This document shows, one piece after another, positions 1,460 to 21,869 of a stretch of 21,869 nucleotides of DNA (positions are counted from its first letter, which is position 1; each line of letters starts with the position of its first letter). The notes below the pieces were generated by a model. The model searched no databases, was not told where the DNA came from, and worked only from the letters and a program-made list of their open reading frames with translations. The stretch is from Macrostomum lignano (taxonomy: Eukaryota): positions 1-21,869 of the forward strand of contig NIVC01005200.1 of assembly GCA_002269645.1 (NCBI GenBank), read 5' to 3'. A program made the translations under genes and the position numbers.

Positions 1460-3183
1460 CTGTGTGCACCCTGGCGCACTTTAAGCGACATTGTCACACA
1501 ACCGGCGAGAGGCATCACTGCCCATTCCGCAGACTCCCCTGAGCAGGCACACAAGCGCGCGGATACGTACGCAGTCATACGCACAGGCACACACACACAA
1601 ACGTGCACGAGGCACTTATTGGCCAAGTGTGCAAAAGCTTGCACATATTGGGACTGCTCCGACACACGAAAAATCACACACACACACGTCCCCACACAGG
1701 CAATTTTCAACCCACCAAATCGATTTTTATTGACAACATGCTTTTGGCTTACTGAAAACAGTTGGAAAGCATTTTTCGAGGTGCATTGAACTCACAACAG
1801 ATTGTACATGTATACTTGTCTAAAACAGAATTAAAAAACCCTGGTGTCTTGCTGAATTCCACTTAAGGCAATAATATCAGCGCGTCAAATTTCACCAGAT
1901 AATTTCAGCGATCATAGATTATAGAAGACAGGATGGTAAATGGCAAGGGACTTTAAGGTTATCGAAAACAAACGACATTGACACATATCAAAAAAATTTT
2001 ACGATCTGAATAAACAAAATTTGCTACATTTAGTGCCACTGGGAAAAAACAATTCTGTAGCGAAACTCCACTGTTCATAAAAATGTACTTTATTGATTAT
2101 GACACAATCACTAGAATTACTCAAAAGGTACATGTCAGCTATTCGGACCCACAGAATGCTATGTAAAAGGATGCGGAAATGAACCACACTATAGCAGAAG
2201 CCAGCACACACTATAGTATAGGGCTGTCCCAACAATTCCACCATAGCCAGTGTGGATGGGGCTGTCCCAACAATTCCACCATAGCCAGTGTGGATGGGGC
2301 TGTCCCAACAATTCCAGCATAGCTTGAAAAAGAATATACACAAATACTATAAAAAGCAAATGCTAGAGCTCTACCGCGGTCATTGCACCGGGTTTTATTA
2401 GAAACAGACTGCAAAAAAATGCGTCCTCTGAATAATATTCCAGTGAAGCACACAACAGTTAATCGGCTTCTCGATTCAGAAACTTAAAAAATAACCAGCT
2501 CCGCCAGAAAACTCATCAATTAACTGACTGCCGGCACGGATAGCGGCTGCTGCTGCTGCTGCTGCTGCTGCTGCGGCTTGTGAGCAGCAAGTGAACCAAA
2601 TGACGGATGCAGCGGCGAGATCAGAATGCTCGCTGCTGATCGTTAAAGCGCATTCTTGTCTCTTAGGCATGTCGCTGGCGTTGCTGACTTCAGAAGCTGC
2701 GAGGAAAAGAAATCAATTAAGATAGGCTTGCTTTAGTAATCATTAATAGGCTATAAAGGAACCCTTTAATAGAACGTGTTCAACTAATGCTGGGTCTGTT
2801 TTGAAAAGTCAGAACTCAGAAGTAGTCGCGATTAGAATCAGTATTGTCCCAATAAGTGCGACCCAACAAATGCTGTTCAAAAAATAGGCCTGGCTGCAAT
2901 GTCCCAATAAATGCCCAACAAATTACTAGCCTTGAGCTAGGCTGGGCTGTGTTTACTATTCATTGCGTTTGTAGCTTGTGTCCCAACAATGCCACTGAGA
3001 TTGTTGCATTGCTTTTGAATTGTGCTCTACCAGGTAACACAAGTACTCTGGTGTACAATACTTCTACAGCAGATAATACTCACCCAAAACAGATCGTCTC
3101 TTTCTCTTTAATCCTGTGCCAGACGGGTTTTCTTCAGATCCACCAGAAAATTCACAAATAGACTGACTGCCTGCACGGATAGC

Positions 3184-3216
<33 letters not shown>

Positions 3217-3827
3217 GGCTTGTGAGCAGCAAGGGAACCAAATGACGGATGCAGCGGCGAGATCAGAATGCTCGCTGCTGATCGTTAAAGCGCATTCTTG
3301 TCTCTTAGGCATGTCGCTGGCGTTGCTGACTTCAGAAGCTGCGAGGAAAAGAAATCAATTAAGATAGGCTTGCTTTAGTAATCATTAATAGGCTATAAAG
3401 GAACCCTTTAATAGAACGTGTTCAACTAATGCTGGGTCTGTTTTGAAAAGTCAGAACTCAGAAGTAGTCGCGATTAGAATCAGTATTGTCCCAATAAGTG
3501 CGACCCAACAAATGCTGTTCAAAAAATAGGCCTGGCTGCAATGTCCCAATAAATGCCCAACAAATTACTAGCCTTGAGCTAGGCTGGGCTGTGTTTACTA
3601 TTCTTTGCGTTTGTATAGCTTGTGTCCCAACAATGCCACTGAGATTGTTGCATTGCTTTTGAATTGTGCTCTACCAGGTAACACAAGTACTCTGGTGTAC
3701 AATACTTCTACAGCAGATAATACTCACCCAAAACAGATCGTCTCTTTCTCTTTAATCCTGTGCCAGACGGGTTATCTTCAGATCCACCAGAAAATTCACA
3801 AATAGACTGACTGCCTGCACGGATAGC

Positions 3828-3863
<36 letters not shown>

Positions 3864-5511
3864 GGCTTGTGAGCAGCAAGTGAACCAAATGACGGATGCA
3901 GCGGCGAGATCAGAATGCTCGCTGCTGATCGTTAAAGCGCATTCTTGTCTCTTAGGCATGTCGCTGGCGTTGCTGACTTCAGAAGCTGCGAGGAAAAGAA
4001 ATCAATTAAGATAGGCTTGCTTTAGTAATCATTAATAGGCTATAAAGGAACCCTTTAATAGAACGTGTTCAACTAATGCTGGGTCTGTTTTGAAAAGTCA
4101 GAACTCAGAAGTAGTCGCGATTAGAATCAGTATTGTCCCAATAAGTGCGACCCAACAAATGCTGTTCAAAAAATAGGCCTGGCTGCAATGTCCCAATAAA
4201 TGCCCAACAAATTACTAGCCTTGAGCTAGGCTGGGCTGTGTTTACTATTCTTTGCGTTTGTATAGCTTGTGTCCCAACAATGCCACTGAGATTGTTGCAT
4301 TGCTTTTGAATTGTGCTCTACCAGGTAACACAAGTACTCTGGTGTACAATACTTCTACAGCAGATAATACTCACCCAAAACAGATCGTCTCTTTCTCTTT
4401 AATCCTGTGCCAGACGGGTTATCTTCAGATCCACCAGAAAATTCACAAATAGACTGACTGCCTGCACGGATAGCGGCTGCTGCTGCTGCTTTTCTTTCTT
4501 TCTTTCTTTTTCGGGTCACGGACATTGTAGCTAGACGTAGCTAATAGGACCGGGGGCGTAGCCCCATGCAGCCGGGGCGCTGACCCTGCGCGGGCGGGCA
4601 GTAGACGGCGGAATCCAATTTGCGGCCTGCGGCGGGTGGCCAGAGAGCGTGGGGACCCGAGTCCCGGTGCGCAGGGCTCCTCCGCAGACCGACTTACGCT
4701 GTAAAAACCGCCATCCACCGCCAACCCAACGTTGGGGGACAGCTCTCCCAGGCTGCATACCCGGAGGTGAGACCAATTCGTCACCCCGTCGATGGCAGGG
4801 ACGCACGGAGCTCCTGCCACATTGGCGGGGTGTCCAGGGGCGCGACGTGGACGCTGGTCTCGTGCCACCCGCTGCTGCTGCTGCTGCTGCCGCTGCTGCT
4901 GCGGCTTGTGAGCAGCAAGTGAACCAAATGACGGATGCAGCGGCGAGATCAGAATGCTCGCTGCTGATCGTTAAAGCGCATTCTTGTCTCTTAGGCATGT
5001 CGCTGGCGTTGCTGACTTCAGAAGCTGCGAGGAAAAGAAATCAATTAAGATAGGCTTGCTTTAGTAATCATTAATAGGCTATAAAGGAACCCTTTAATAG
5101 AACGTGTTCAACTAATGCTGGGTCTGTTTTGAAAAGTCAGAACTCAGAAGTAGTCGCGATTAGAATCAGTATTGTCCCAATAAGTGCGACCCAACAAATG
5201 CTGTTCAAAAAATAGGCCTGGCTGCAATGTCCCAATAAATGCCCAACAAATTACTAGCCTTGAGCTAGGCTGGGCTGTGTTTACTATTCATTGCGTTTGT
5301 AGCTTGTGTCCCAACAATGCCACTGAGATTGTTGCATTGCTTTTGAATTGTGCTCTACCAGGTAACACAAGTACTCTGGTGTACAATACTTCTACAGCAG
5401 ATAATACTCACCCAAAACAGATCGTCTCTTTCTCTTTAATCCTGTGCCAGACGGGTTTTCTTCAGATCCACCAGAAAATTCACAAATAGACTGACTGCCT
5501 GCACGGATAGC

Positions 5512-5547
<36 letters not shown>

Positions 5548-6155
5548 GGCTTGTGAGCAGCAAGTGAACCAAATGACGGATGCAGCGGCGAGATCAGAAT
5601 GCTCGCTGCTGATCGTTAAAGCGCATTCTTGTCTCTTAGGCATGTCGCTGGCGTTGCTGACTTCAGAAGCTGCGAGGAAAAGAAATCAATTAAGATAGGC
5701 TTGCTTTAGTAATCATTAATAGGCTATAAAGGAACCCTTTAATAGAACGTGTTCAACTAATGCTGGGTCTGTTTTGAAAAGTCAGAACTCAGAAGTAGTC
5801 GCGATTAGAATCAGTATTGTCCCAATAAGTGCGACCCAACAAATGCTGTTCAAAAAATAGGCCTGGCTGCAATGTCCCAATAAATGCCCAACAAATTACT
5901 AGCCTTGAGCTAGGCTGGGCTGTGTTTACTATTCTTGCGTTTGTAGCTTGTGTCCCAACAATGCCACTGAGATTGTTGCATTGCTTTTGAATTGTGCTCT
6001 ACCAGGTAACACAAGTACTCTGGTGTACAATACTTCTACAGCAGATAATACTCACCCAAAACAGATCGTCTCTTTCTCTTTAATCCTGTGCCAGACGGGT
6101 TTTCTTCAGATCCACCAGAAAATTCACAAATAGACTGACTGCCTGCACGGATAGC

Positions 6156-6188
<33 letters not shown>

Positions 6189-6797
6189 GGCTTGTGAGCA
6201 GCAAGTGAACCAAATGACGGATGCAGCGGCGAGATCAGAATGCTCGCTGCTGATCGTTAAAGCGCATTCTTGTCTCTTAGGCATGTCGCTGGCGTTGCTG
6301 ACTTCAGAAGCTGCGAGGAAAAGAAATCAATTAAGATAGGCTTGCTTTAGTAATCATTAATAGGCTATAAAGGAACCCTTTAATAGAACGTGTTCAACTA
6401 ATGCTGGGTCTGTTTTGAAAAGTCAGAACTCAGAAGTAGTCGCGATTAGAATCAGTATTGTCCCAATAAGTGCGACCCAACAAATGCTGTTCAAAAAATA
6501 GGCCTGGCTGCAATGTCCCAATAAATGCCCAACAAATTACTAGCCTTGAGCTAGGCTGGGCTGTGTTTACTATTCATTGCGTTTGTAGCTTGTGTCCCAA
6601 CAATGCCACTGAGATTGTTGCATTGCTTTTGAATTGTGCTCTACCAGGTAACACAAGTACTCTGGTGTACAATACTTCTACAGCAGATAATACTCACCCA
6701 AAACAGATCGTCTCTTTCTCTTTAATCCTGTGCCAGACGGGTTTTCTTCAGATCCACCAGAAAATTCACAAATAGACTGACTGCCTGCACGGATAGC

Positions 6798-6830
<33 letters not shown>

Positions 6831-7438
6831 GCTTGTGAGCAGCAAGTGAACCAAATGACGGATGCAGCGGCGAGATCAGAATGCTCGCTGCTGATCGTTA
6901 AAGCGCATTCTTGTCTCTTAGGCATGTCGCTGGCGTTGCTGACTTCAGAAGCTGCGAGGAAAAGAAATCAATTAAGATAGGCTTGCTTTAGTAATCATTA
7001 ATAGGCTATAAAGGAACCCTTTAATAGAACGTGTTCAACTAATGCTGGGTCTGTTTTGAAAAGTCAGAACTCAGAAGTAGTCGCGATTAGAATCAGTATT
7101 GTCCCAATAAGTGCGACCCAACAAATGCTGTTCAAAAAATAGGCCTGGCTGCAATGTCCCAATAAATGCCCAACAAATTACTAGCCTTGAGCTAGGCTGG
7201 GCTGTGTTTACTATTCATTGCGTTTGTAGCTTGTGTCCCAACAATGCCACTGAGATTGTTGCATTGCTTTTGAATTGTGCTCTACCAGGTAACACAAGTA
7301 CTCTGGTGTACAATACTTCTACAGCAGATAATACTCACCCAAAACAGATCGTCTCTTTCTCTTTAATCCTGTGCCAGACGGGTTTTCTTCAGATCCACCA
7401 GAAAATTCACAAATAGACTGACTGCCTGCACGGATAGC

Positions 7439-7471
<33 letters not shown>

Positions 7472-8078
7472 GGCTTGTGAGCAGCAAGTGAACCAAATGA
7501 CGGATGCAGCGGCGAGATCAGAATGCTCGCTGCTGATCGTTAAAGCGCATTCTTGTCTCTTAGGCATGTCGCTGGCGTTGCTGACTTCAGAAGCTGCGAG
7601 GAAAAGAAATCAATTAAGATAGGCTTGCTTTAGTAATCATTAATAGGCTATAAAGGAACCCTTTAATAGAACGTGTTCAACTAATGCTGGGTCTGTTTTG
7701 AAAAGTCAGAACTCAGAAGTAGTCGCGATTAGAATCAGTATTGTCCCAATAAGTGCGACCCAACAAATGCTGTTCAAAAAATAGGCCTGGCTGCAATGTC
7801 CCAATAAATGCCCAACAAATTACTAGCCTTGAGCTAGGCTGGGCTGTGTTTACTATTCATTGCGTTTGTAGCTTGTGTCCCAACAATGCCACTGAGATTG
7901 TTGCATTGCTTTTGAATTGTGCTCTACCAGTAACACAAGTACTCTGGTGTACAATACTTCTACAGCAGATAATACTCACCCAAAACAGATCGTCTCTTTC
8001 TCTTTAATCCTGTGCCGACGGGTTTTCTTCAGATCCACCAGAAAATTCACAAATAGACTGACTGCCTGCACGGATAGC

Positions 8079-8111
<33 letters not shown>

Positions 8112-8720
8112 GGCTTGTGAGCAGCAAGTGAACCAAATGACGGATGCAGCGGCGAGATCAGAATGCTCGCTGCTGATCGTTAAAGCGCATTCTTGTCTCT
8201 TAGGCATGTCGCTGGCGTTGCTGACTTCAGAATCTGCGAGGAAAAGAAATCAATTAAGATAGGCTTGCTTTAGTAATCATTAATAGGCTATAAAGGAACC
8301 CTTTAATAGAACGTGTTCAACTAATGCTGGGTCTGTTTTGAAAAGTCAGAACTCAGAAGTAGTCGCGATTAGAATCAGTATTGTCCCAATAAGTGCGACC
8401 CAACAAATGCTGTTCAAAAAATAGGCCTGGCTGCAATGTCCCAATAAATGCCCAACAAATTACTAGCCTTGAGCTAGGCTGGGCTGTGTTTACTATTCAT
8501 TGCGTTTGTAGCTTGTGTCCCAACAATGCCACTGAGATTGTTGCATTGCTTTTGAATTGTGCTCTACCAGGTAACACAAGTACTCTGGTGTACAATACTT
8601 CTACAGCAGATAATACTCACCCAAAACAGATCGTCTCTTTCTCTTTAATCCTGTGCCGGACGGGTTTTCTTCAGATCCACCAGAAAATTCACAAATAGAC
8701 TGACTGCCTGCACGGATAGC

Positions 8721-8756
<36 letters not shown>

Positions 8757-9363
8757 GGCTTGTGAGCAGCAAGTGAACCAAATGACGGATGCAGCGGCGA
8801 GATCAGAATGCTCGCTGCTGATCGTTAAAGCGCATTCTTGTCTCTTAGGCATGTCGCTGGCGTTGCTGACTTCAGAAGCTGCGAGGAAAAGAAATCAATT
8901 AAGATAGGCTTGCTTTAGTAATCATTAATAGGCTATAAAGGAACCCTTTAATAGAACGTGTTCAACTAATGCTGGGTCTGTTTTGAAAAGTCAGAACTCA
9001 GAAGTAGTCGCGATTAGAATCAGTATTGTCCCAATAAGTGCGACCCAACAAATGCTGTTCAAAAAATAGGCCTGGCTGCAATGTCCCAATAAATGCCCAA
9101 CAAATTACTAGCCTTGAGCTAGGCTGGGCTGTGTTTACTATTCATTGCGTTTGTAGCTTGTGTCCCAACAATGCCACTGAGATTGTTGCATTGCTTTTGA
9201 ATTGTGCTCTACCAGTAACACAAGTACTCTGGTGTACAATACTTCTACAGCAGATAATACTCACCCAAAACAGATCGTCTCTTTCTCTTTAATCCTGTGC
9301 CGACGGGTTTTCTTCAGATCCACCAGAAAATTCACAAATAGACTGACTGCCTGCACGGATAGC

Positions 9364-9396
<33 letters not shown>

Positions 9397-10004
9397 GGCT
9401 TGTGAGCAGCAAGTGAACCAAATGACGGATGCAGCGGCGAGATCAGAATGCTCGCTGCTGATCGTTAAAGCGCATTCTTGTCTCTTAGGCATGTCGCTGG
9501 CGTTGCTGACTTCAGAAGCTGCGAGGAAAAGAAATCAATTAAGATAGGCTTGCTTTAGTAATCATTAATAGGCTATAAAGGAACCCTTTAATAGAACGTG
9601 TTCAACTAATGCTGGGTCTGTTTTGAAAAGTCAGAACTCAGAAGTAGTCGCGATTAGAATCAGTATTGTCCCAATAAGTGCGACCCAACAAATGCTGTTC
9701 AAAAAATAGGCCTGGCTGCAATGTCCCAATAAATGCCCAACAAATTACTAGCCTTGAGCTAGGCTGGGCTGTGTTTACTATTCATTGCGTTTGTAGCTTG
9801 TGTCCCAACAATGCCACTGAGATTGTTGCATTGCTTTTGAATTGTGCTCTACCAGTAACACAAGTACTCTGGTGTACAATACTTCTACAGCAGATAATAC
9901 TCACCCAAAACAGATCGTCTCTTTCTCTTTAATCCTGTGCCGGACGGGTTTTCTTCAGATCCACCAGAAAATTCACAAATAGACTGACTGCCTGCACGGA
10001 TAGC

Positions 10005-10045
<41 letters not shown>

Positions 10046-10649
10046 GTGAGCAGCAAGTGAACCAAATGACGGATGCAGCGGCGAGATCAGAATGCTCGCT
10101 GCTGATCGTTAAAGCGCATTCTTGTCTCTTAGGCATGTCGCTGGCGTTGCTGACTTCAGAATCTGCGAGGAAAAGAAATCAATTAAGATAGGCTTGCTTT
10201 AGTAATCATTAATAGGCTATAAAGGAACCCTTTAATAGAACGTGTTCAACTAATGCTGGGTCTGTTTTGAAAAGTCAGAACTCAGAAGTAGTCGCGATTA
10301 GAATCAGTATTGTCCCAATAAGTGCGACCCAACAAATGCTGTTCAAAAAATAGGCCTGGCTGCAATGTCCCAATAAATGCCCAACAAATTACTAGCCTTG
10401 AGCTAGGCTGGGCTGTGTTTACTATTCATTGCGTTTGTAGCTTGTGTCCCAACAATGCCACTGAGATTGTTGCATTGCTTTTGAATTGTGCTCTACCAAG
10501 TAACACAAGTACTCTGGTGTACAATACTTCTACAGCAGATAATACTCACCCAAAACAGATCGTCTCTTTCTCTTTAATCCTGTGCCGGACGGGTTTTCTT
10601 CAGATCCACCAGAAAATTCACAAATAGACTGACTGCCTGCACGGATAGC

Positions 10650-10693
<44 letters not shown>

Positions 10694-11297
10694 GTGAGCA
10701 GCAAGTGAACCAAATGACGGATGCAGCGGCGAGATCAGAATGCTCGCTGCTGATCGTTAAAGCGCATTCTTGTCTCTTAGGCATGTCGCTGGCGTTGCTG
10801 ACTTCAGAATCTGCGAGGAAAAGAAATCAATTAAGATAGGCTTGCTTTAGTAATCATTAATAGGCTATAAAGGAACCCTTTAATAGAACGTGTTCAACTA
10901 ATGCTGGGTCTGTTTTGAAAAGTCAGAACTCAGAAGTAGTCGCGATTAGAATCAGTATTGTCCCAATAAGTGCGACCCAACAAATGCTGTTCAAAAAATA
11001 GGCCTGGCTGCAATGTCCCAATAAATGCCCAACAAATTACTAGCCTTGAGCTAGGCTGGGCTGTGTTTACTATTCATTGCGTTTGTAGCTTGTGTCCCAA
11101 CAATGCCACTGAGATTGTTGCATTGCTTTTGAATTGTGCTCTACCAAGTAACACAAGTACTCTGGTGTACAATACTTCTACAGCAGATAATACTCACCCA
11201 AAACAGATCGTCTCTTTCTCTTTAATCCTGTGCCGGACGGGTTTTCTTCAGATCCACCAGAAAATTCACAAATAGACTGACTGCCTGCACGGATAGC

Positions 11298-11341
<44 letters not shown>

Positions 11342-11942
11342 AGCAGCAAGTGAACCAAATGACGGATGCAGCGGCGAGATCAGAATGCTCGCTGCTGATC
11401 GTTAAAGCGCATTCTTGTCTCTTAGGCATGTCGCTGGCGTTGCTGACTTCAGAATCTGCGAGGAAAAGAAATCAATTAAGATAGGCTTGCTTTAGTAATC
11501 ATTAATAGGCTATAAAGGAACCCTTTAATAGAACGTGTTCAACTAATGCTGGGTCTGTTTTGAAAAGTCAGAACTCAGAAGTAGTCGCGATTAGAATCAG
11601 TATTGTCCCAATAAGTGCGACCCAACAAATGCTGTTCAAAAAATAGGCCTGGCTGCAATGTCCCAATAAATGCCCAACAAATTACTAGCCTTGAGCTAGG
11701 CTGGGCTGTGTTTACTATTCATTGCGTTTGTAGCTTGTGTCCCAACAATGCCACTGAGATTGTTGCATTGCTTTTGAATTGTGCTCTACCAAGTAACACA
11801 AGTACTCTGGTGTACAATACTTCTACAGCAGATAATACTCACCCAAAACAGATCGTCTCTTTCTCTTTAATCCTGTGCCGGACGGGTTTTCTTCAGATCC
11901 ACCAGAAAATTCACAAATAGACTGACTGCCTGCACGGATAGC

Positions 11943-11983
<41 letters not shown>

Positions 11984-12587
11984 GTGAGCAGCAAGTGAAC
12001 CAAATGACGGATGCAGCGGCGAGATCAGAATGCTCGCTGCTGATCGTTAAAGCGCATTCTTGTCTCTTAGGCATGTCGCTGGCGTTGCTGACTTCAGAAT
12101 CTGCGAGGAAAAGAAATCAATTAAGATAGGCTTGCTTTAGTAATCATTAATAGGCTATAAAGGAACCCTTTAATAGAACGTGTTCAACTAATGCTGGGTC
12201 TGTTTTGAAAAGTCAGAACTCAGAAGTAGTCGCGATTAGAATCAGTATTGTCCCAATAAGTGCGACCCAACAAATGCTGTTCAAAAAATAGGCCTGGCTG
12301 CAATGTCCCAATAAATGCCCAACAAATTACTAGCCTTGAGCTAGGCTGGGCTGTGTTTACTATTCATTGCGTTTGTAGCTTGTGTCCCAACAATGCCACT
12401 GAGATTGTTGCATTGCTTTTGAATTGTGCTCTACCAAGTAACACAAGTACTCTGGTGTACAATACTTCTACAGCAGATAATACTCACCCAAAACAGATCG
12501 TCTCTTTCTCTTTAATCCTGTGCCGGACGGGTTTTCTTCAGATCCACCAGAAAATTCACAAATAGACTGACTGCCTGCACGGATAGC

Positions 12588-12634
<47 letters not shown>

Positions 12635-13235
12635 AGCAGCAAGTGAACCAAATGACGGATGCAGCGGCGAGATCAGAATGCTCGCTGCTGATCGTTAAAG
12701 CGCATTCTTGTCTCTTAGGCATGTCGCTGGCGTTGCTGACTTCAGAATCTGCGAGGAAAAGAAATCAATTAAGATAGGCTTGCTTTAGTAATCATTAATA
12801 GGCTATAAAGGAACCCTTTAATAGAACGTGTTCAACTAATGCTGGGTCTGTTTTGAAAAGTCAGAACTCAGAAGTAGTCGCGATTAGAATCAGTATTGTC
12901 CCAATAAGTGCGACCCAACAAATGCTGTTCAAAAAATAGGCCTGGCTGCAATGTCCCAATAAATGCCCAACAAATTACTAGCCTTGAGCTAGGCTGGGCT
13001 GTGTTTACTATTCATTGCGTTTGTAGCTTGTGTCCCAACAATGCCACTGAGATTGTTGCATTGCTTTTGAATTGTGCTCTACCAAGTAACACAAGTACTC
13101 TGGTGTACAATACTTCTACAGCAGATAATACTCACCCAAAACAGATCGTCTCTTTCTCTTTAATCCTGTGCCGGACGGGTTTTCTTCAGATCCACCAGAA
13201 AATTCACAAATAGACTGACTGCCTGCACGGATAGC

Positions 13236-13283
<48 letters not shown>

Positions 13284-15361
13284 GAGCAGCAAGTGAACCA
13301 AATGACGGATGCAGCGGCGAGATCAGAATGCTCGCTGCTGATCGTTAAAGCGCATTCTTGTCTCTTAGGCATGTCGCTGGCGTTGCTGACTTCAGAATCT
13401 GCGAGGAAAAGAAATCAATTAAGATAGGCTTGCCTTTAGTAATCATTAATAGGCTATAAAGGAACCCTTTAATAGAACGTGTTCAACTAATGCTGGGTCT
13501 GTTTTGAAAAGTCAGAACTCAGAAGTAGTCGCGATTAGAATCAGTATTGTCCCAATAAGTGCGACCCAACAAATGCTGTTCAAAAAATAGGCCTGGCTGC
13601 AATGTCCCAATAAATGCCCAACAAATTACTAGCCTTGAGCTAGGCTGGGCTGTGTTTACTATTCATTGCGTTTGTAGCTTGTGTCCCAACAATGCCACTG
13701 AGATTGTTGCATTGCTTTTGAATTGTGCTCTACCAAGTAACACAAGTACTCTGGTGTACAATACTTCTACAGCAGATAATACTCACCCAAAACAGATCGT
13801 CTCTTTCTCTTTAATCCTGTGCCGGACGGGTTTTCTTCAGATCCACCAGAAAATTCACAAATAGACTGACTGCCTGCACGGATAGCGGCTGCTGCTGCTG
13901 CTGGCTGCTTGTGAGCAGCAAGTGAAATAAATGACGGATGCAGCGGCGAGTTTGAATGCGGACGAACCTGTGCGTGGGCGCACAAAAGAAAAATCACTTA
14001 TTGAGAAATCTGTCTGATTTGTTTGAAAACAGATTTAAATGTCGCTGTTCTAATAAATGCTTCATTGTCAATGAAATTTTACTGTACAATTAAAATACTC
14101 GTAGTTTGTCCCAACGGTGCTGCTTGTGTGAGTCAGATGGAGTATGTACAAATTTCACTTTCTCGATAGTGCCGCAGCAACTTACTTTGCCCTTAGCTGA
14201 CTGCAGGCAGGCTTGCTTGTTTTAATAATGCCCTAGAAAACAAAACACTTATTGCAATTAAGTTTCAGTTACTGGGAGTTGCAATTTTCTGAGATCCTAT
14301 CTCTTTGCTGACCGCCCATCTTCCCAATCAGATGAGCTTCTTTTTTGTTGCTGACTCTGCCCTGCTTTTCTTTCGGCGTTTGCCTTTGCAGTAAGCTTTG
14401 TTTCTCGTTCTAGAATGCTGTCATTTTATACTGTTCTTTAGTTATGTAATAATACTGCTTTGAGTAGAAAAATAATTTGACTATCGAATTATAACAGTAA
14501 TATATTATATTAGTTGCCCAGCAAACTCACATGGTATTTCTCCAAGTCTCTAGTACTGTGGGCGATGTGTCATGCGAGATTTCTTTCCTAAATGTTTTGA
14601 TTGAAACTTTTAGTAAAATTTGTTCTTCCTAGAAGTGTAAATTTTGCCTACTTATGATTGCTCAACTGGCTGTTGTAAATTAATTGATAAATAAGGTGAT
14701 CGTGCCGCCTCTCTTATATTTCACTGAGCTCAGAGTATTACTAGGCTGCTTATTATTTTTTTCAACGTACAAAAAATACGACATATACGAGTACGAGACA
14801 AGACTTACTTGACAATGAAGGCAAATCTGTTTGTTATAGAAGAAAACGGTAGCTTATCGATATCAACGTATCTGGAATTTTAGAAAAGTACATATGTAAA
14901 TTCCAGTTAAGTTTTTATTTAATCATAAAATTTTAAAAAGAATTTTAAATTCTACTTACATATGTGTAATGGTTCCTAGCCAAGTCTTTTCATGCCAGGT
15001 CATGCATGGAAACTCTTGTGACGTGGCACATTTTGTCTGTGTAGTGCAGGTCTCGTAAATGAATTATATTCGTTTGAACATATGCAGTACGCCAGTACGC
15101 CGTTTGTCAAAGGGAACTTCTACATGTACCTTTCCGTTAGAATTGGCTCTTCCTCTTGTAGGCCTCAACTTCAGTGTAAACTTTATCCTGACTCCCTTGC
15201 GCCCGCCTCTCCTCCCCGCTTCCCCCCGCCGCGATAGGAATGTACGCGTGGCCTGGGTAAGGGATTGCCTGGGTCTTGTACACGCTTGTCCTAACACTTC
15301 TGCACTGTACGTGGGTTTATCTTTACGATCCAAGATAAGCAGAATTGTTTTTCAGGAAGGC
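230..15361 (-). CDS. Candidate multi-exon gene for a large Gln-rich repeat protein, readable only with TAA/TAG=Gln (5' end and exact boundaries uncertain)
   Basis: Manual exon chain in transcript order, with splice phases: 15361-15130 (0>1), 14871-14809 (1>1), 14454-14186 (1>0), 13967-13787 (0>0, one extra nt near 13903), 16 array exons (0>0), 2696-2496 (0>0) counted separately as the last array exon, and 1459-230 (phase 0, ends TGA). Junctions are GT/AG. The unique exons have no internal TGA, and TAA/TAG often lie next to CAA/CAG. No family recognised. Confidence 0.6.
291..826. repeat. 18-bp minisatellite (~29 units; agcaacgacaggttactt / agcaacgacgagttactt, with an agcaacattaattacatt variant at the left end)
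   Basis: Directly visible tandem repeat; unit length is a multiple of 3. Confidence 0.97.
2221..2323. repeat. 38-bp tandem repeat, ~2.7 copies (gggctgtcccaacaattccaccatagccagtgtggatg)
   Basis: Exact copies at 2221-2258 and 2259-2296, partial copy from 2297. Confidence 0.95.
3084..3338 (-). CDS. Representative array exon (255 nt, phase 0-0): LLKSATPATCLRDKNAL(TAA)RSAASILISPLHPSFGSLAAHKP-Q10-PLSVQAVSLFVNFLVDLKKTRLAQD(TAA)RERDDLFW
   Basis: Acceptor ttgatttcttttcctcgcag| and donor TGG|gtgagt are present in the array units. Equivalent exons with lengths divisible by 3: 3728-3985, 5412-5669, 6056-6310, 7339-7593, 8621-8878, 9905-10162, 10550-10810, 11198-11455, 11843-12100, 12488-12748. A poly-Ala frame of the same exon is also open, in the standard code. 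Confidence 0.65.
4491..4870 (-). mobile_element. SINE-like non-autonomous non-LTR retroposon (380 bp) with a 5' HDV-like ribozyme and an (AAAG)n tail, inserted into a (CAG)n tract
   Basis: GC-rich block absent from all other array units. 3' tail AAAAAGAAAGAAAGAAAGAAAA on the minus strand. Flanked on both sides by (GCT)n, with ~14 nt excess over a normal period (1039 - ~645 - 380), consistent with a target-site duplication. No Pol III A/B boxes recognised. Confidence 0.88.
4769..4870 (-). ncRNA. HDV-like (delta-like) self-cleaving ribozyme
   Basis: Minus strand: P1 GGGTGGC; J1/2 AC; P2 GAGACCA; P3 GCG; L3 TCCACGT; P3' CGC; P1' GCCCCT (G1-U wobble, T4 bulged); P1.1 GG; P4 CACCCCG...TGGCAGG...CCTGCCA...CGGGGTG; J4/2 ACGAAT (putative catalytic C at 4780); P2' TGGTCTC. 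This matches the nested double-pseudoknot topology, including U20/G25 and C21C22:GG. Confidence 0.88.
13787..13967 (-). CDS. First exon of the array (divergent 5' part VRPHSNSPLHPSFISLAAHKQ...)
   Basis: Has its own acceptor tgatttttcttttgtgcgcccacgcacag| and the standard array donor TGG|gtgagt. Length is 181 nt, i.e. one extra base in the CAG tract (~13903). Confidence 0.5.
14186..14454 (-). CDS. Candidate exon (phase 1>0; table 6): ...LERETKLTAKANAERKAGQSQQQKRSSSDWEDGRSAKRQDLRKLQLPVTETQLQQVFCFLGHYQNKQACLQSAKGK
   Basis: Acceptor tttttctactcaaagcag| and consensus donor AAA|gtaagt. Six in-frame TAR, e.g. TAA TTG CAA TAA; no TGA. Confidence 0.55.
14809..14871 (-). CDS. Candidate 63-nt exon
   Basis: Acceptor tacttttctaaaattccag| and donor CAA|gtaagt. 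The phase 1-1 reading TLISISYRFLL(TAA)QTDLPSLS fits the neighbouring exons. A phase 2-2 reading YVDIDKLPFSSITNRFAFIV is also open. Confidence 0.55.
15130..15361 (-). CDS. Candidate exon (phase 0>1; table 6): AFLKNNSAYLGSQRQTHVQ...SGEERRAQGSQDKVYTEVEAYKRKSQFQRK
   Basis: Acceptor actaactactag| (CTAAC branch-like motif just upstream) and donor AAAG|gtacat. Three in-frame TAA; no TGA. Confidence 0.45.
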
Positions 15362-15547
15362 CTAGTAGTTAGTTTTGGGCCAACTAGTCATCGATTTCGA
15401 CTTTACAGTGACAGTGACACGCAAACATGTGCTAGCAGTCCATGCAGTCATCTTAAGTTTCTTGGTATCTCAGTACATTTCAGTATACCAGACGATAATT
15501 ATCATAATTCTAGGAAAAATTTTGCTACATAGTATAGCTGCCCAAAC

Positions 15548-15680
15548 CCAGGCCAATAAGGAAGTCATTTAAAGCCTTAGAGATTAAACGTTTCCCTCTA
15601 ATACTCGTCCTCGGTTTTCTCGGGAAATGCAAAGTTTTTCTTTGCCCTTTATTTCTTTGCTCTAAAAGCGCTTCATAAGA
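15548..15680 (-). CDS. Possible further upstream exon
   Basis: Acceptor attctcacag|. The phase 2>0 frame LMKRFQSKEIKGKEKLCISRENRGRVLEGNVQSLRLQMTSLLAW has 3 TAR. The donor |gtttgg is non-consensus, and another frame is open in the standard code. Confidence 0.25.
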
Positions 15681-16426
15681 CTGTGAGAATTTCCACCGGA
15701 AAACTACCTCACTCAAAGTGTCACTTTACGTTAATGGCCTCCAGTCACTAACTTGAGTCAGTTAATACCCATTCACATATGACAAATAGATTAATGCAGC
15801 TGACTGAAAACGAGAATTTCAGTTAAAATGGCCGAGGGCACAGGCGGATGTAACCTTAATTTGCCATGTTTCGTGTATAAGTGAAATTGGAAGCTAATGA
15901 ATTTAGATGCTAGCTGTTTCTATGCAAAAATCTAAATATACTAAATCTATAAGGTTTGTATGCTTGATTGTAATATTCTAAATCTTTATTAAATTATTTC
16001 ATATTTTATAGTAAACACGATGCCAAATGTCAGGATCCTTTCAAGTGTCGATTGGCAGCCCTGTGGAGAACCTCTATCTGTTACTTGTAGTAGACTTTCT
16101 TGATATTGTAAGAAATATTGTAATAAAACGAGAATTCCGATTTGAGACCCAATTGTTCTGTTGGATCAGACCATCAGTTCGCATAATTTTTTAAACTTCT
16201 TAGGACACTGCAAATCATTAGATTCCCCGTGTTTGATTAAAAATATGAAAAAATGACATTGATTTTTGAAAGGAGAATCGAAAGACGGTTCCAATGAATA
16301 TTTTTTCATTTCAATAGAATTCATTTTTGGAAGTGTCGGGACGCACTTATTGGGCCTGGCCCAACACATTTTTGGTCCTAATAGCACGGGTCAGTTTATA
16401 CACGCTTGTCCCAAGAAATGCCTAAT

Positions 16427-16427
<1 letters not shown>

Positions 16428-16465
<38 letters not shown>

Positions 16466-16625
16466 GACAGACAGACAAACACAGACACACACAGACAGAC
16501 AAACACACACACAGATAGACAGACACACAGACAGGCAGACAGACACACAGACAGACGCAGACAACAGATACAGCAGCACAGACACACAGACAACGCAACA
16601 ACAGACAGACAACAGACAGACAGAG
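16428..16625. repeat. Compound (CA)n/(CAGA)n microsatellite
   Basis: Pure (CA)n at 16428-16460, followed by degenerate CAGA/CA repeats. Confidence 0.95.
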
Positions 16626-17149: not shown

Positions 17150-17983
17150 AAGCTACCTAAAACTCTACCCAACTACAGCAAAACCTACCTAAATCTTACC
17201 CTAATTACAGCAAAAGCACCGTAATCAGAATTACAGCAGAAGATACCTAAATCTCACCCTAATTACAGCAGAAGCTACCTAAATCTCACCCTAATTACAG
17301 CAGAAGCTACCTAAATCTCACCCTAATTACAGCAACCTACCTAAATCTCAGCTTGATTACAACAAAACCGACTTAAATCCCACTCTAATTACAGCAAAAG
17401 CTACCTAAATCTCGGCCTGATTACAGCAAAACCTACCTAAATCTCTCCTAGTTACAACAAAGCTACCTAAATCTCATCCTAGTTACACAAAGGCTACCTA
17501 AATCTCATCCTAATTACAGCAAAAGCTACCTAAATCTCATCCTAGTTACAACAAGCTACCTAAATCTCACTCTAATTACAGCAAAAGCTACCTAAAATCT
17601 CGGCCTCCCTGATTTACAGCAAAGCTACCAAAATCTCACTCTAATTACAGCAAAAGCTACCTAAATCTCACTCTAATTACAGCAAAAGCTACCTAAATCT
17701 CACTCTAATTACAGCAAAAGCCAACAAAATCTCACTCTAATTACAGCAAAAGCTACCTAAATCTCACTCTAATTACAGCAAAAGCTACCTAAATCTCACT
17801 CTAATTACAGCAAAGCTACCTAAATCTCACTCTAATTACAGCAAAAGCTACCTAAATCTCACTCTTAATTACAGCAAAAAGCTACCTAAATCTCACTCTA
17901 ATTACAGCAAAAAGCTACCTAAATCTCGGCCTGATTACAGCAAAAGCTACCTAAATCTCACTCTAATTACAGCAAAGCTACCT
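17150..17983. repeat. ~32-bp minisatellite (caaaagctacctaaatctcactctaattacag), ~26 copies
   Basis: Period 32 (ctaattacag at 17641 and 17673). More degenerate at the left end. Confidence 0.96.
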
Positions 17984-18020: not shown

Positions 18021-18348
18021 GTATCAGGGGCGGGTTTAGTGGAGTATCAGGGCGGGTTTAGTGGAGTATCAGAGGCGGGTTTAGTGGAGTATCAGGGGCG
18101 GGTTTAGTGGAGTATCAGGGGCGGGTTTAGTGGAGTATCAGGGGCGGGTTTAGTGGAGTATCAGAGGCGGGTTTAGTGGAGTATCAGAGGCGGGTTTAGT
18201 GGAGTATCAGGGGCGGGTTTAGTGGAGTATCAGAGCGGGTTTAGTGGAGTATCAGAGGCGGGTTTAGTGGAGTATCAGAGGCGGGTTTAGTGGAGTATCA
18301 GAGGCAGGTTTAGTGGAGTATCAAGGGCGGGTTTAAGGGAGTATCAGG
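18021..18348. repeat. G-rich 23-bp minisatellite (gtggagtatcagRggcgggttta), left part, ~14 copies
   Basis: Directly visible; ends at the transposon left end. Confidence 0.96.
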
Positions 18349-21300
18349 CATAGTTGCCACCCAGTTTTTAAAGAAAAGTAGCGCAAGGACTAATTTTTAG
18401 CGCAGGTCTTAAAAAACTCGCATCCTTCCCACAAACCAGTTTTTCTTTTCACTATGACAGACATTTAGTAAATTCGAAAACAAAAATGGTTTACATGTAC
18501 AAGGAAAATTGTTTCAAGTTGCGCAGACAAAAATAAAAAGAAGCACCTCAGACAATAAAGACTACAGCATGAAGCTTAGAGTTATAGTTACTACAAACAT
18601 TCAGTAAATTTTAAGCTGATAAAATGTACAAACATAGTCATTTCTTCTTCTTCTTTGATTTTGCTTCTTCACTGTCACCATGCCGCTTGCGTAGGGCATG
18701 CTCCTCCTTATCAGCAAGTGCGAGCATGTCCTGAGCCTTCTTGCGCATTTCGTCAATCTTTGTTTGGGCCTTTGCCTGCTTTTGTTGCTTCTGCTGCTGG
18801 AGCTCTTTCTCCTTTTCAGTAACCAGTCGTCGCTGCTCCTCCAGTGCTTGCTGAAGTCGCTTCATGGCCTTTTCGTTTTGCTTAGCTCGTCGTCGCTCAT
18901 CGGCTTTGCTTTTGGCTTGAAAAGCTGTGTCCAGCAGGTTAGAATCAATAGTGACCTTGGCTGGGCCAGTGCTGTTGCATTTCATCCAAACTTTCACAGC
19001 CAAAATCGAGTCCAGCGTAACTTCTCCTAGCCTATTGCGCTGCTTGGTCAAGTTGTTGGCCACCCATTTCAAAACTCGTTCACTATCTGCATTACCGTGC
19101 GGTATGCAGCAGGCAGCACGACCTAGTTTAGAAAGATGAGGATAATCTTCAACAGAAAGCTGTGCCCAAAAAGCCTCTGGTGTCTCCTTTGCTTTCTCAG
19201 TTGGGCAGGTCAGTCGAAGCCTTGTAGCTTCCAGCCGGATATTATCCAGCAAGTCGGCAGAAATGACTGTGCTCATAGCACGCCCAACACGTAGAATGCT
19301 GTTGTCAAAGTTGAAGTCTGATCCCAACATGTATTCAGGATCCACAAACTGAAGGCCAGAAAGCACCTTGTTGTTGAAAGGTAAGTAGGCAAACAGTCGA
19401 CTAATAATTTCAGAAAAGAAGCAGCGAACTGACTTAAAAAAGCCAATCTGCTCCATCTGACGTAACGTGCAACAGTCTCACGGGTGGCCGAGCCGATGAT
19501 TAGATCTTTGTTCATTAGTTGATTGTTGCGATCAGTAGCCCTGTCAACCAGGTCTGAAAGAGAGCGGCTGTTTTCAACAACTTCACTCGCATGAAGCAAA
19601 GAAGAATGTCACTAAAAAGCTTTTCCAGCGAAGAAGCCAAGTGGTGAACCTGAGTGCTCTCCCGCTGAAAAATTTTCTCGAATGCTTCGCATCTTGGCAG
19701 CACTTGGCTTAAGAACTGGAGCTTGGCTAGCATCTCATCAGTAAGGGCCAGCTTGATTCGTCGTGCCCGAATGTTGTCCAGTTCTGAGGCACTAGCTTTC
19801 TCAAAGTGCAGCTTCAGGGCCTCCCATTGCTCTAGAATCCGTCGAATGACGTTTAGAATCTGGAGCCAGCGAGTTTCGACTCGGCGGATGAACACGTGTT
19901 CAGCCAGGTCCAGTGCATCCTGAATCTAAAAATTTTAATTTTGTCAGGGAAGAAAAGCACATTCAAGATTAAGCAAAGTTTAAATTCATACCTCATGGAA
20001 TGCTCCGCGCCTTTTCACAAATCGGAAATAGTTATAGACATCATCCATCAGTCCTTCAGCCTCGCCAGTGCTGTCAAATGCTTAGTTGCATATTGAACAC
20101 TATTATGTACATGATGGAGACTGCAGCCTCCAACATAATAAGCTGCGGCATAGCATCTTTCAGCTTGGTGAGAAGTCCATTGTGGATGCCTGAAATGTGA
20201 AAGGTGAATTATTTTAGGGACAGGATCTTTGTCAACAAGGATTACTCATCAAGCTATCTCGCATACCTCTCATTGCATTGCAGGAATCTGTCATCACGGA
20301 AATAACATTCCTTGCAGGCAATTTGGCTTGGGATAGCAACGACAAAACTGTGTCCTTCATATTTGACGCCGATGAATTTTAAGCTCCTCTGAACCAATGT
20401 AGACAAGAATTGCCTTCTGCCTTTCAATGCAGAAAGTGCGGGCCAGTAAAACCAGCCAGCAGCGGTCACGTTTCGTGCCCTCATCAAGCAGAATTGAAAA
20501 GGGAGAGTCACGAAGGCTCTTAAACATTTCCTCCTTAGCATGTGGGGCAAGTGCATCAGTGACCAGGTACGTTGTCTTGGTTCTTCCACATGAAAAGTTC
20601 TGAGCAACACTGCTATCAGGAATAGCAACAGGCAGTGTTTCAGAAATTTCGTCCATAGTTTTGAATGATAGGTCTTTCCGAACAACAAGCAGTCCGAATC
20701 GTAGGCTCGCCGCCATGGTCTGTTGGGGCAAAGATGCCTCTGCCTCCACTTTTTTAGTTGTTGGTTCTCAGATGGAGTGATTGGGAAAAAAGCATTGATT
20801 TTTTGCTGACTGTAAGCAGCAACCATAGCCCGAGAAAGAGCCTTGTGCTTTGCACCATCAGCATGTTGTCGCAAAGCAGCAATGCCATGTTGACGAAATT
20901 TACTCCACGTTGCACAATCTACATGTGGCTTCATCGTCATTGTCGTCGTCTTTCTGGCACCATCGTGATATTTTGACCCCAGAATGGTCATGTTCAGATA
21001 ACCAGGTAGCATTACACTTCGTTTTTCGATCAGTGGCATTAGAATGTGGCTGAAATGTGACTTGAATTTTATACGAGCGTAGTACCTAAACTACTACTTC
21101 CCTAGATTCCCACTTTAGTACTTTCACTACTTATACATATAATATACTTATACATAGACTTATACGTATAAGTTTATAGAGAAATATTACAAAAATAATG
21201 ACCCAAAAAGTATAGGAACAAGAATCATTTTGACCTTTCTTACTTTATTTAGAATGACTTTTAGCAATAGAAGTAAAAAATAGACAAGCAAAAAAATAAT

Positions 21301-21398: not shown

Positions 21399-21869
21399 GT
21401 ATCAGGGGCGGTTTTCAAAGTAAGTGTCAGGGGCGGGTTAGTGAGGATCGGGTTTAGTGGAGTATCAGAGGCGGGTTTAGTGAGTATCAGAGGCGGGTTT
21501 AGTGGAGTATCAGAGGCGGATTTAGTGAGTATCAGAGGCAGGTTAAGTGGAGTATCAGGGGCGGGTTTAGTAAAGTATCAGGGGCGGGTTTAAGGGATAT
21601 CAGGGCGGTTTAGAAGGAGTACTCAGAGGGGGGGGGGAGTGGAGCATCAGGCGCGAGTTTGGAGATATAAGGGCGGGTTTTAGTCGAGTATCAGGGGCGG
21701 GTTTAGGGAAGTATCAGGGCGGGTTTAGTGGAGTATCAGGGGCGGGTTTAGTGGAGTATCAGGGGCGGGTTTAGTGGAGTATCAGGGGCGGGTTATTGAG
21801 TATCAGGGGCGGGTTTAGTCGAGTATCAGGGGCGGGTTTATTGAGTATCAGGGGCGGGTTTAGTGGAGT
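21399..21869. repeat. G-rich 23-bp minisatellite, right part, running to the window end
   Basis: Same unit as 18021-18348, more degenerate. Confidence 0.96.

Follow-up and report, generated by a model that had tools for sequence, protein, structure and literature searches.

Layout and reading frame of the array

The window analysed here, a stretch of 21,869 nucleotides from Macrostomum lignano (contig NIVC01005200.1, assembly GCA_002269645.1), contains a head-to-tail tandem array of exon and intron cassettes on the minus strand at about positions 2496-13967, as identified with Tandem Repeats Finder and exact searches. GCT/CAG microsatellite repeats recur in it roughly every 640-650 bp from 2546 to 13282, and the unit periods are 640-651 bp with a single outlier of 1037 bp. 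The region is a young macrosatellite of M. lignano and represents a lineage-specific repeat gene. A first-pass annotation of the same DNA had correctly described the array as tandem exon and intron cassettes, but had taken its product to be a poly-Gln protein with a tunable length, which it is not.

For the splice sites, the minus strand was searched for exact occurrences of the acceptor string TTCCTCGCAG| and the donor string TGG|GTGAGT. All 17 acceptors (TTGATTTCTTTTCCTCGCAG|) and all 17 donors were intact, in agreement with the strong acceptor and the TGG|gtgagt donor proposed earlier. The two sets delimit 16 complete exons as well as an edge exon at the 5' end, which has an acceptor of its own, and a terminal exon at the 3' end. 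The junction strings ...TTTTGG|CTTCTGAAG and |ATTCTGAAG, both of which the first-pass annotation had quoted, occur in the array, and the donor-side string CTGTTTTGG precedes |CTTCTGAAG at the predicted exon-exon junction. Tandem Repeats Finder puts the length of the CAG tract in the window at 10.7 to 15.3 repeats, depending on the unit. Exon lengths were expected to range from 255 to 261 nt in steps of three; this holds for 11 of the 16 full exons, which are 255, 258 or 261 nt long, but not for the remainder, three of which are 254 nt, one 263 nt and one interrupted by a 386-bp insertion.

Translation of the exons in three frames showed that the Gln frame (phase 0, containing AVSLFVNFLVDLKK) is closed by two TAA stops per unit, at exon nucleotides 52 and 229 in every unit. 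The sole open frame reads the CAG tract as poly-Ala. A single nucleotide is left over at the end of the exon, so that the introns are of phase 1-1, and the junction codon is split as G|CT (Ala) or G|AT (Asp). The module encoded in this frame is SEVSNASDMPKRQECALTISSEHSDLAAASVIWFTCCSQ(A)nIRAGSQSICEFSGGSEENPSGTGLKRKRRSVL, or in its general form SEVSNASDMPKRQECALTISSEHSDLAAASVIWFTCCSQ-(Ala)n-IRAGSQSICEFSGGSEENPSGTGLKRKRRSVL-[A/D], with a length of 80-87 amino acids. The open stretch is nearly coextensive with the exon, with an overhang of 16 nt upstream and 17 nt downstream, and each exon carries an ATG of its own (MPKRQE...).

The poly-Gln product of phase 0-0 exons thus finds no place in the sequence, and the amphipathic helix assigned to AVSLFVNFLVDLKK lies in the closed frame and appears only in frame-patched ab initio models. 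The idea that any subset of exons could be skipped stands in part: the exons are phase-symmetric and leaving out an intact one would preserve the frame, although their phase is 1-1 and not 0-0. A protein with about 17 modules cannot be made from the window copy because 5 of the 16 full exons are frame-broken. The longest open reading frame (ORF) that starts with ATG in a conceptual, fully spliced RNA from the window is 499 amino acids long (exons 3-8), or about 5-6 modules. Structure prediction, which had been suggested as a check on the module, did not yield a confident fold (AlphaFold predicted local distance difference test, pLDDT, of 42 for P0003, with no alignment supplied). The sole Pfam match of the module was a marginal hit to FTR_C over the poly-Ala tract, which we judged spurious.

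A motif of the R-X-K/R-R type, KRKRR|S, sits at every module boundary. As it conforms to a furin-type site, the product may be a polyprotein that is cleaved, but KRKRR could equally be a nuclear localisation signal. Alternatively, AAGAGAAAGAGA, the KRKRR-coding sequence shortly before the donor, may act as a purine-rich exonic splicing enhancer.

Gene models, relatives and decay of the repeat

A query of two spliced modules in the Ala frame retrieved 30 predicted proteins, all from M. lignano, and the matches include the junctions ...RSVL-A-SEVSNASD... and ...RSVL-D-SEVSHASD.... Three of the 30 are GenBank BOX15 models, and a fourth such model (P0031) came from an exhaustive HMMER search. The GenBank annotation of M. 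lignano was built from RNA-seq data (StringTie/TACO) and a BLAT-mapped de novo transcriptome, with gene boundaries determined by TBONE and ORFs by TransDecoder (Wudarski et al. 2017, PMC5730564). Splicing of positions 10001-10223, 10610-10855 and 11241-11341 of L002, a contig with another copy of the array, reproduced the model P0004 perfectly, and these are the predicted donor and acceptor sites. The analogous splice on a second contig, L001, gave the model P0002 except for the middle module, in which the genome has 13 Ala and the model 7, a mismatch that points to another copy as the source of the transcript behind the model. The C-terminus encoded by the terminal exon of the window is identical to that of P0002.

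In the paralogous copies, transcripts hence connect each donor to the next acceptor and yield tandem modules in the mRNA. These RNA-derived models use exactly the joins that the first-pass annotation had predicted, and spliced transcripts, on which its proposal of exon cassettes depended, do exist for the family. Unlike a classical non-coding satellite, the array has splice sites, an open frame and spliced RNA-derived models. Many of the UniProt (WormBase ParaSite) models, on the other hand, patch the frames via the internal sites IRAG|gtcagt and atcagcag|CG and so acquire poly-Gln stretches, which are regarded as prediction artefacts on frameshifted copies.

UniProt entries of M. lignano among P0015 and P0024-P0030 are named Dymeclin, UCH, BAF250_C, Rho-GAP or DRIM domain-containing. 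The six examined (P0015, P0024-P0026, P0029 and P0030) consist of the repeat module alone, so the names are probably annotation artefacts. We found no mention of the locus tags in papers or supplements, and our searches on M. lignano satellites and on Kazal turned up no account of the array.

The exhaustive HMMER search, for which P0003 served as query, also recovered two diverged repeat families whose members all come from M. lignano, B (P0038) and C (P0033, P0036 and P0037); we refer to the window-type repeat as family A. The module of family B (A0A1I8HX90) has the form SKVSNASDMPKRED...GCSQSIDDLSCGAKDNSSGKGLKRKRRSVLA. Family C (A0A1I8HFW1, annotated as 'Kazal-like domain-containing') has 10 or more perfect modules, SEVESSADAS...AGFSQTV...SANAKRKRRSAQA, followed by a Cys-rich, Kazal-like C-terminus. 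The three families are 28-54% identical to one another at the amino acid level and have in common SEV/SKV at the start, G.SQ[ST][IV] in the middle of the module and an invariant KRKRRS at the end. In tblastn searches, the family-B module aligned over its whole length (residues 1-80) with Ala-frame translations of the window exons (identity 51-57%, E about 1e-18), which supports this frame as the ancestral coding frame as well as the correspondence of one exon to one module. Judged by these alignments, the module belongs to a lineage-specific family of which at least two diverged paralogue families keep the frame, the boundaries and the KRKRRS end. Two other candidates from the same search, P0032 and P0035, were bacterial-looking (Cys-rich and PKD-like tandem repeats) and were judged spurious.

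Diversity was analysed in an alignment of 37 units from the window, L001 and L002. The nucleotide diversity was 0.0087 in the exon outside the tract (11 variable sites of 219) and 0.0060 in the intron (13 of 387). The variants in the Ala frame comprised 9 nonsynonymous and 2 synonymous changes, the former including TGG>TAG in 11 of the L002 units. Since exon diversity was not below that of the intron and nonsynonymous variants prevailed, the recent copies appear to evolve without detectable protein-level constraint. Full exons with an intact frame numbered 11 of 16 in the window, 5 of 6 in L001, 3 of 16 in L002 and 8 of 9 in L003, a third contig. The window copy is thus partly decayed, and the nonsense substitution in L002 is unlikely to be an assembly error.

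A GTG-initiated antisense ORF of 101 amino acids was also seen over intron and exon in every unit, for example at 5184-5489 on the plus strand. It is full-length in 12 of the 17 unit copies of the window (an 84-amino-acid form occurs in five) and in all units of L003; its retention probably just reflects the youth of the repeats.

The repeat-bearing block and its genomic copies

The array is part of a larger block with unique arms on either side (Table 1), which was found at five places, namely in the window and in four GenBank contigs (L001-L004). All copies examined have the same unique arms, and we therefore rejected the reading of the array as a dispersed satellite. The 5' end of the block is common to the window, L001, L003 and L004, and the 3' end to the window, L001 and L003, while L002 runs off its contig within the block. 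Beyond the block ends, the flanks of the window, L001, L003 and L004 are unrelated and contain different minisatellites. The block has a GTGCAYKAGGCA terminus; its 5' end is ...|GTGCATTAGGCATTTCTTGGGAC (window 16430), and its 3' end is ...GTGCCTCGTGCAC|GTTTGTGTGTG (window 1603/1592).

An imperfect terminal inverted repeat (TIR) lies at both exact block ends, with 28 of 38 positions matching, a score reached by 1 of 2000 shuffles. Each intron contains the TIR-like motif WTTRTTGGGAC four times, and the motif is also found in the 5' TIR and, three times, in a 38-bp repeat of the 3' arm (77 matches versus 4.7 expected). The ATTGTTGGGAC motif of that repeat likewise recurs in the 5' TIR and, with four occurrences each, in all introns. 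In most copies GTTT adjoins both TIRs, and the block ends lie within GT-rich microsatellite.

Within the 5' arm, the identity between copies is 96.7-99.3%. The window is as similar to the other copies as these are among themselves, its closest relative being L003 (99.3%). Despite this identity, we rejected the possibility that the window and L003 are the same locus, as their flanks are unrelated on both sides. The number of units is 7 in L001, 10 in L003, at least 16 in L002 (up to the contig end) and 17 in the window; L004 ends in an intron after about 4.5 units. The length of the CAG tract is typical of the locus, with runs of 13-16 Ala for the window, 11 for L001 and, in most cases, 7 for L002. 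The two levels of repeat variation put forward in the first-pass annotation, module number and tract length, thus both differ between genomic copies, except that the tract is not poly-Gln. Since the block is present at several unrelated sites, we consider it most likely to be a non-autonomous mobile element.

When the same pairs of copies from the window, L001 and L002 are compared, the array units (2700-13780 in the window) differ between loci by 0.8-0.9% and the 5' unique arm (13968-16430) by 1.5-2.8%. The lower divergence of the array could stem from conversion among the copies or from the cassette as a whole being under constraint. The 5' arm has mosaic haplotype patterns among the copies, suggestive of conversion or recombination. 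In L003 (NIVC01000257.1, 1-20371), the block is enclosed by a gene model for a TIR_2-domain protein that spans over 20 kb of the opposite strand, and it is presumably an intronic insertion there.

The insertion in exon 15 resembles a short interspersed nuclear element (SINE). Neither tRNAs nor Rfam families match it, and it occurs only once in the window and not at all in L001 and L002; scans of the whole window for Rfam families and tRNAs gave no matches either.

Table 1. Positions of the block, the array and their parts in the window.
Feature	Position	Strand	Description
TIR-bounded block	1603..16430	-	Multi-copy, ~14.8 kb: 2.46-kb unique 5' region, array and 0.9-kb unique 3' region; shared ends with L001, L003, L004
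5' TIR	16393..16430	-	GTGCATTAGGCATTTCTTGGGACAAGCGTGTATAAACT
Macrosatellite	2496..13967	-	16 full units of ~0.64 kb, each with an exon of about 255 nt and a 387-nt intron, and partial edge units
Exon 1	13787..13967	-	5' edge unit with its own acceptor (...gcgcccacgcacag|G); repeat-unit homology from about unit position 55-68
Exon 2	13136..13398	-	263 nt, frame-broken: Ala frame, then Gln frame, then stop
Exon 3	12488..12748	-	261 nt, Ala frame intact
Exon 4	11843..12100	-	258 nt, intact
Exon 5	11198..11455	-	258 nt, intact
Exon 6	10550..10810	-	261 nt, intact
Exon 7	9905..10162	-	258 nt, intact
Exon 8	9265..9518	-	254 nt, 1-nt deletion leading to a premature stop (..ENPSAQD*)
Exon 9	8621..8878	-	258 nt, intact
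Exon 10	7980..8233	-	254 nt, 1-nt deletion identical to that of exon 8
Exon 11	7339..7593	-	255 nt, intact
Exon 12	6698..6951	-	254 nt, 1-nt deletion directly ahead of the tract, leading to a premature stop
Exon 13	6056..6310	-	255 nt, intact; reference unit for the analyses
Exon 14	5412..5669	-	258 nt, intact
Exon 15	4375..5024	-	CAG tract interrupted by insertion
Insertion in exon 15	4487..4872	-	386 bp, GC-rich, SINE-like, with (GAAA)n tail, in the CAG tract
Exon 16	3728..3985	-	258 nt, intact
Exon 17	3084..3338	-	255 nt, intact
Terminal exon, coding part	2476..2696	-	...AAAIRAGSQLIDEFSGGAGYFLSF; stop codon 2476-2478; repeat homology stops at 2496
Polyadenylation signal	2394..2399	-	AATAAA, about 80 nt past the stop codon
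38-bp repeat	2221..2323	-	2.7 copies in the 3' unique region, with ATTGTTGGGAC motif
3' TIR	1603..1639	-	...AGCTTTTGCACACTTGGCCAATAAGTGCCTCGTGCAC, then GTTTGTGTGTG common to all copies

Interpretation, related systems and neighbouring repeats

Taken as a whole, the data are probably best explained by a young, spliced exon-cassette macrosatellite that is read in the Ala frame, belongs to a lineage-specific family, is probably carried by a mobile block and has partly decayed. According to this explanation, each unit of about 0.64 kb would represent one exon (about 237-263 nt) and one intron of 387 nt with canonical splice sites, and splicing from each donor to the next acceptor would give an mRNA with tandem poly-Ala modules of 80-87 amino acids. 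The ~14.8-kb block with its imperfect TIRs may have spread as a non-autonomous mobile element, and unequal exchange within each copy may then have made the array grow, shrink and homogenise, which would result in differing unit numbers and tracts typical of each locus.

Several points weigh against this explanation. The spliced models derive from paralogous loci, are partial and cover the last 2-3 units only. All gene models are 5'-partial, and we identified neither a 5' exon nor a promoter nor a signal peptide; when the 2.46-kb 5' arm was scanned for a conserved stretch indicative of a first exon, nothing decisive emerged, with 0-15 variable sites per alignment window, the sole one with 0 variable sites being exon 1 itself. 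Shuffling of a 255-nt exon leaves one or more sense frames open by chance in 6.5% of cases. Profile searches of proteins (A/B/C; B/C) gave no GenBank loci for families B and C. Errors in the long-read assembly may account for all four indels of the window copy and overstate its decay, since the three 1-nt deletions are located in two-base runs (CC or GG) and exon 2, at 263 nt, has its additional 2 nt at the CAG tract. As for mobility, which we infer solely from the shared ends and the different flanks, both block ends lie in GT-rich microsatellite, which obscures any target-site duplication, and no transposase partner was identified for the block.

How much of the array is coding can be read in different ways. 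If it were purely non-coding, it would be a transposon-borne satellite whose transcription and splicing are by-products, for example of read-through from units nearby, with the frame a relic or a matter of chance and the models artefacts of ORF calling. Such a satellite would be consistent with the lack of detectable constraint within recent copies, the many broken exons, the frequency of chance frames in the shuffles, a module with neither a confident fold nor a credible Pfam domain, and models that are partial and named, for example, g13 and g2 within larger transcriptional units. We nevertheless find it unlikely, since the frame is coextensive with the exon and is open in three families as divergent as A, B and C, in which the module boundaries and the KRKRRS end are kept as well. 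The opposite extreme is a functional modular protein in the Ala frame whose length is tunable, with many or all exons included, its dose set by module number and poly-Ala length, and with cleavage at KRKRR|S into units of about 80 amino acids or nuclear targeting. The symmetric phase 1-1, the 11 of 16 exon lengths divisible by three, the invariance of KRKRRS across the families, the perfect modules preceding the Kazal-like C-terminus of family C, the varying number of units among copies and the good state of the L003 exons all agree with it. We hold it to be improbable even so, given that 5 of 16 exons in the window and 13 of 16 in L002 are broken, that the exon is no more conserved than the intron and nonsynonymous variants outnumber synonymous ones, that no signal peptide or 5' exon was found, that the pLDDT is low, and that the conserved AAGAGAAAGAGA could instead be a splicing enhancer. 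Phase 0-0 exons encoding poly-Gln modules of about 86 amino acids with AVSLFVNFLVDLKK are refuted for full-exon inclusion and extremely improbable otherwise: segments with AVSLFVNFLVDLKK do occur in some of the UniProt models, but only through internal alternative acceptors and donors or in frameshifted copies, and against them stand the two in-frame stops per unit and the use of the Ala frame both in the RNA-derived GenBank models and in the alignments of the diverged paralogues.

The block itself might be immobile, its copies being homeologous or segmental duplicates that date from the genome duplication of the DV1 line and whose flanks were scrambled by later turnover of repeats. Duplicated blocks with an identity of 95% or more make up 180 Mb of the M. 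lignano genome (PMC5730564); the mutual identity of the copies falls in this range, and the flanks are rich in fast-evolving minisatellites. On the 5' side, however, the homology breaks off at one and the same nucleotide in four copies, and on the 3' side in three, and the sequences farther out share no similarity. In addition, the two termini are inverted repeats of each other, and the window and L003 are nearly identical inside the block while their flanks are unrelated on both sides. We thus see immobility as possible but rather unlikely. At the other end of the range, an active TIR-bounded element with a spliced macrosatellite of its own would disperse a lineage-specific modular gene, unequal exchange would alter module number and tract, and the low divergence of the array would reflect constraint or conversion. 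This more far-reaching scenario strikes us as doubtful; were it true, a transposon would be both the generator and the disperser of new repeat-protein genes.

The exon-cassette macrosatellite favoured here combines features of coding exon-cassette variable number tandem repeats (VNTRs) with those of transposons that contain internal tandem arrays, and the exon-cassette idea is already embodied in public gene models. Coding exon-cassette VNTRs include the human LPA kringle IV-2, NBPF Olduvai (DUF1220) and DMBT1 SRCR repeats. As in these, the tandem units consist of whole exons and introns with a symmetric phase, the unit number would set the module number, and this number varies among gene copies, here between paralogues (7, 10, at least 16 and 17). 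The M. lignano unit is, however, far smaller, with 0.64 kb and one exon, and its low-complexity module has a trinucleotide tract inside it and lacks a recognisable fold. Frameshifts or stops are present in many of its units and no constraint is detectable, and the array resides in a multi-copy, TIR-bounded block. D4Z4/DUX4 and CT47 are transcribed macrosatellites with one ORF per unit. They resemble the array in their kilobase-scale tandem units, each with an ORF, in their variable copy number and in having a poly(A) signal only distal to the array, but the M. lignano units are cis-spliced into a single reading frame and are not separate genes.

Tetris of Drosophila virilis and the bivalve satellites derived from miniature inverted-repeat transposable elements (MITEs) or Helitrons are examples of DNA transposons or MITEs whose internal tandem repeats seed satellites. 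In both cases TIRs bound unique arms and an internal expandable array with a TIR-like motif in every unit, and copies with differing unit numbers are situated at unrelated loci. In M. lignano, by contrast, the internal repeat is a spliced exon-intron cassette with a conserved open frame, and neither a target-site duplication nor a transposase partner was identified. Tandem polyproteins that are cleaved at multibasic sites are known from nematode polyprotein allergens (ABA-1 type) and multi-copy neuropeptide precursors. The near-identical tandem modules that each end in a furin-type R-X-K/R-R are similar to these, whereas no signal peptide was found for the M. lignano repeat, its module has no known fold, and its KRKRR|S is a motif only, which would equally suit nuclear localisation or a splicing enhancer.

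The array shows that a CAG tract need not mean poly-Gln, which corrects a tempting misreading, and that a satellite-like stretch in the repeat-rich genome of M. lignano is a spliced and annotated transcription unit. For annotation it is relevant that many fragmentary 'hypothetical' or misnamed UniProt entries of this species (Dymeclin, UCH, DRIM and others) stem from the repeat. If the block is indeed mobile, it would be a compact case of a transposon-like element with an expandable exon-cassette array and would bear on the origin and spread of lineage-specific repeat proteins.

Other repeats are located in the vicinity of the block. A degenerate hAT-type transposase is distributed over at least three ORFs at 18638-21039 on the minus strand, with a Pfam Dimer_Tnp_hAT match in 18638-19456. 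This remnant lies outside the TIR-bounded block. It is flanked by arrays of a 23-bp minisatellite (GTATCAGGGGCGGGTTTAGTGGA) in the same orientation at 18021-18348 and 21449-21869, which may be subterminal repeats of the hAT element. Immediately outside the 5' end of the block, at 16431-16624, is an (ACAG)n/(GT)n microsatellite. Further minisatellites have repeat lengths of 18 bp (TTACTTAGCAACGACAGG, at 284-824) and 32 bp (26 copies, at 17150-17983), the latter with a strong strand asymmetry (GC skew of about -0.36).

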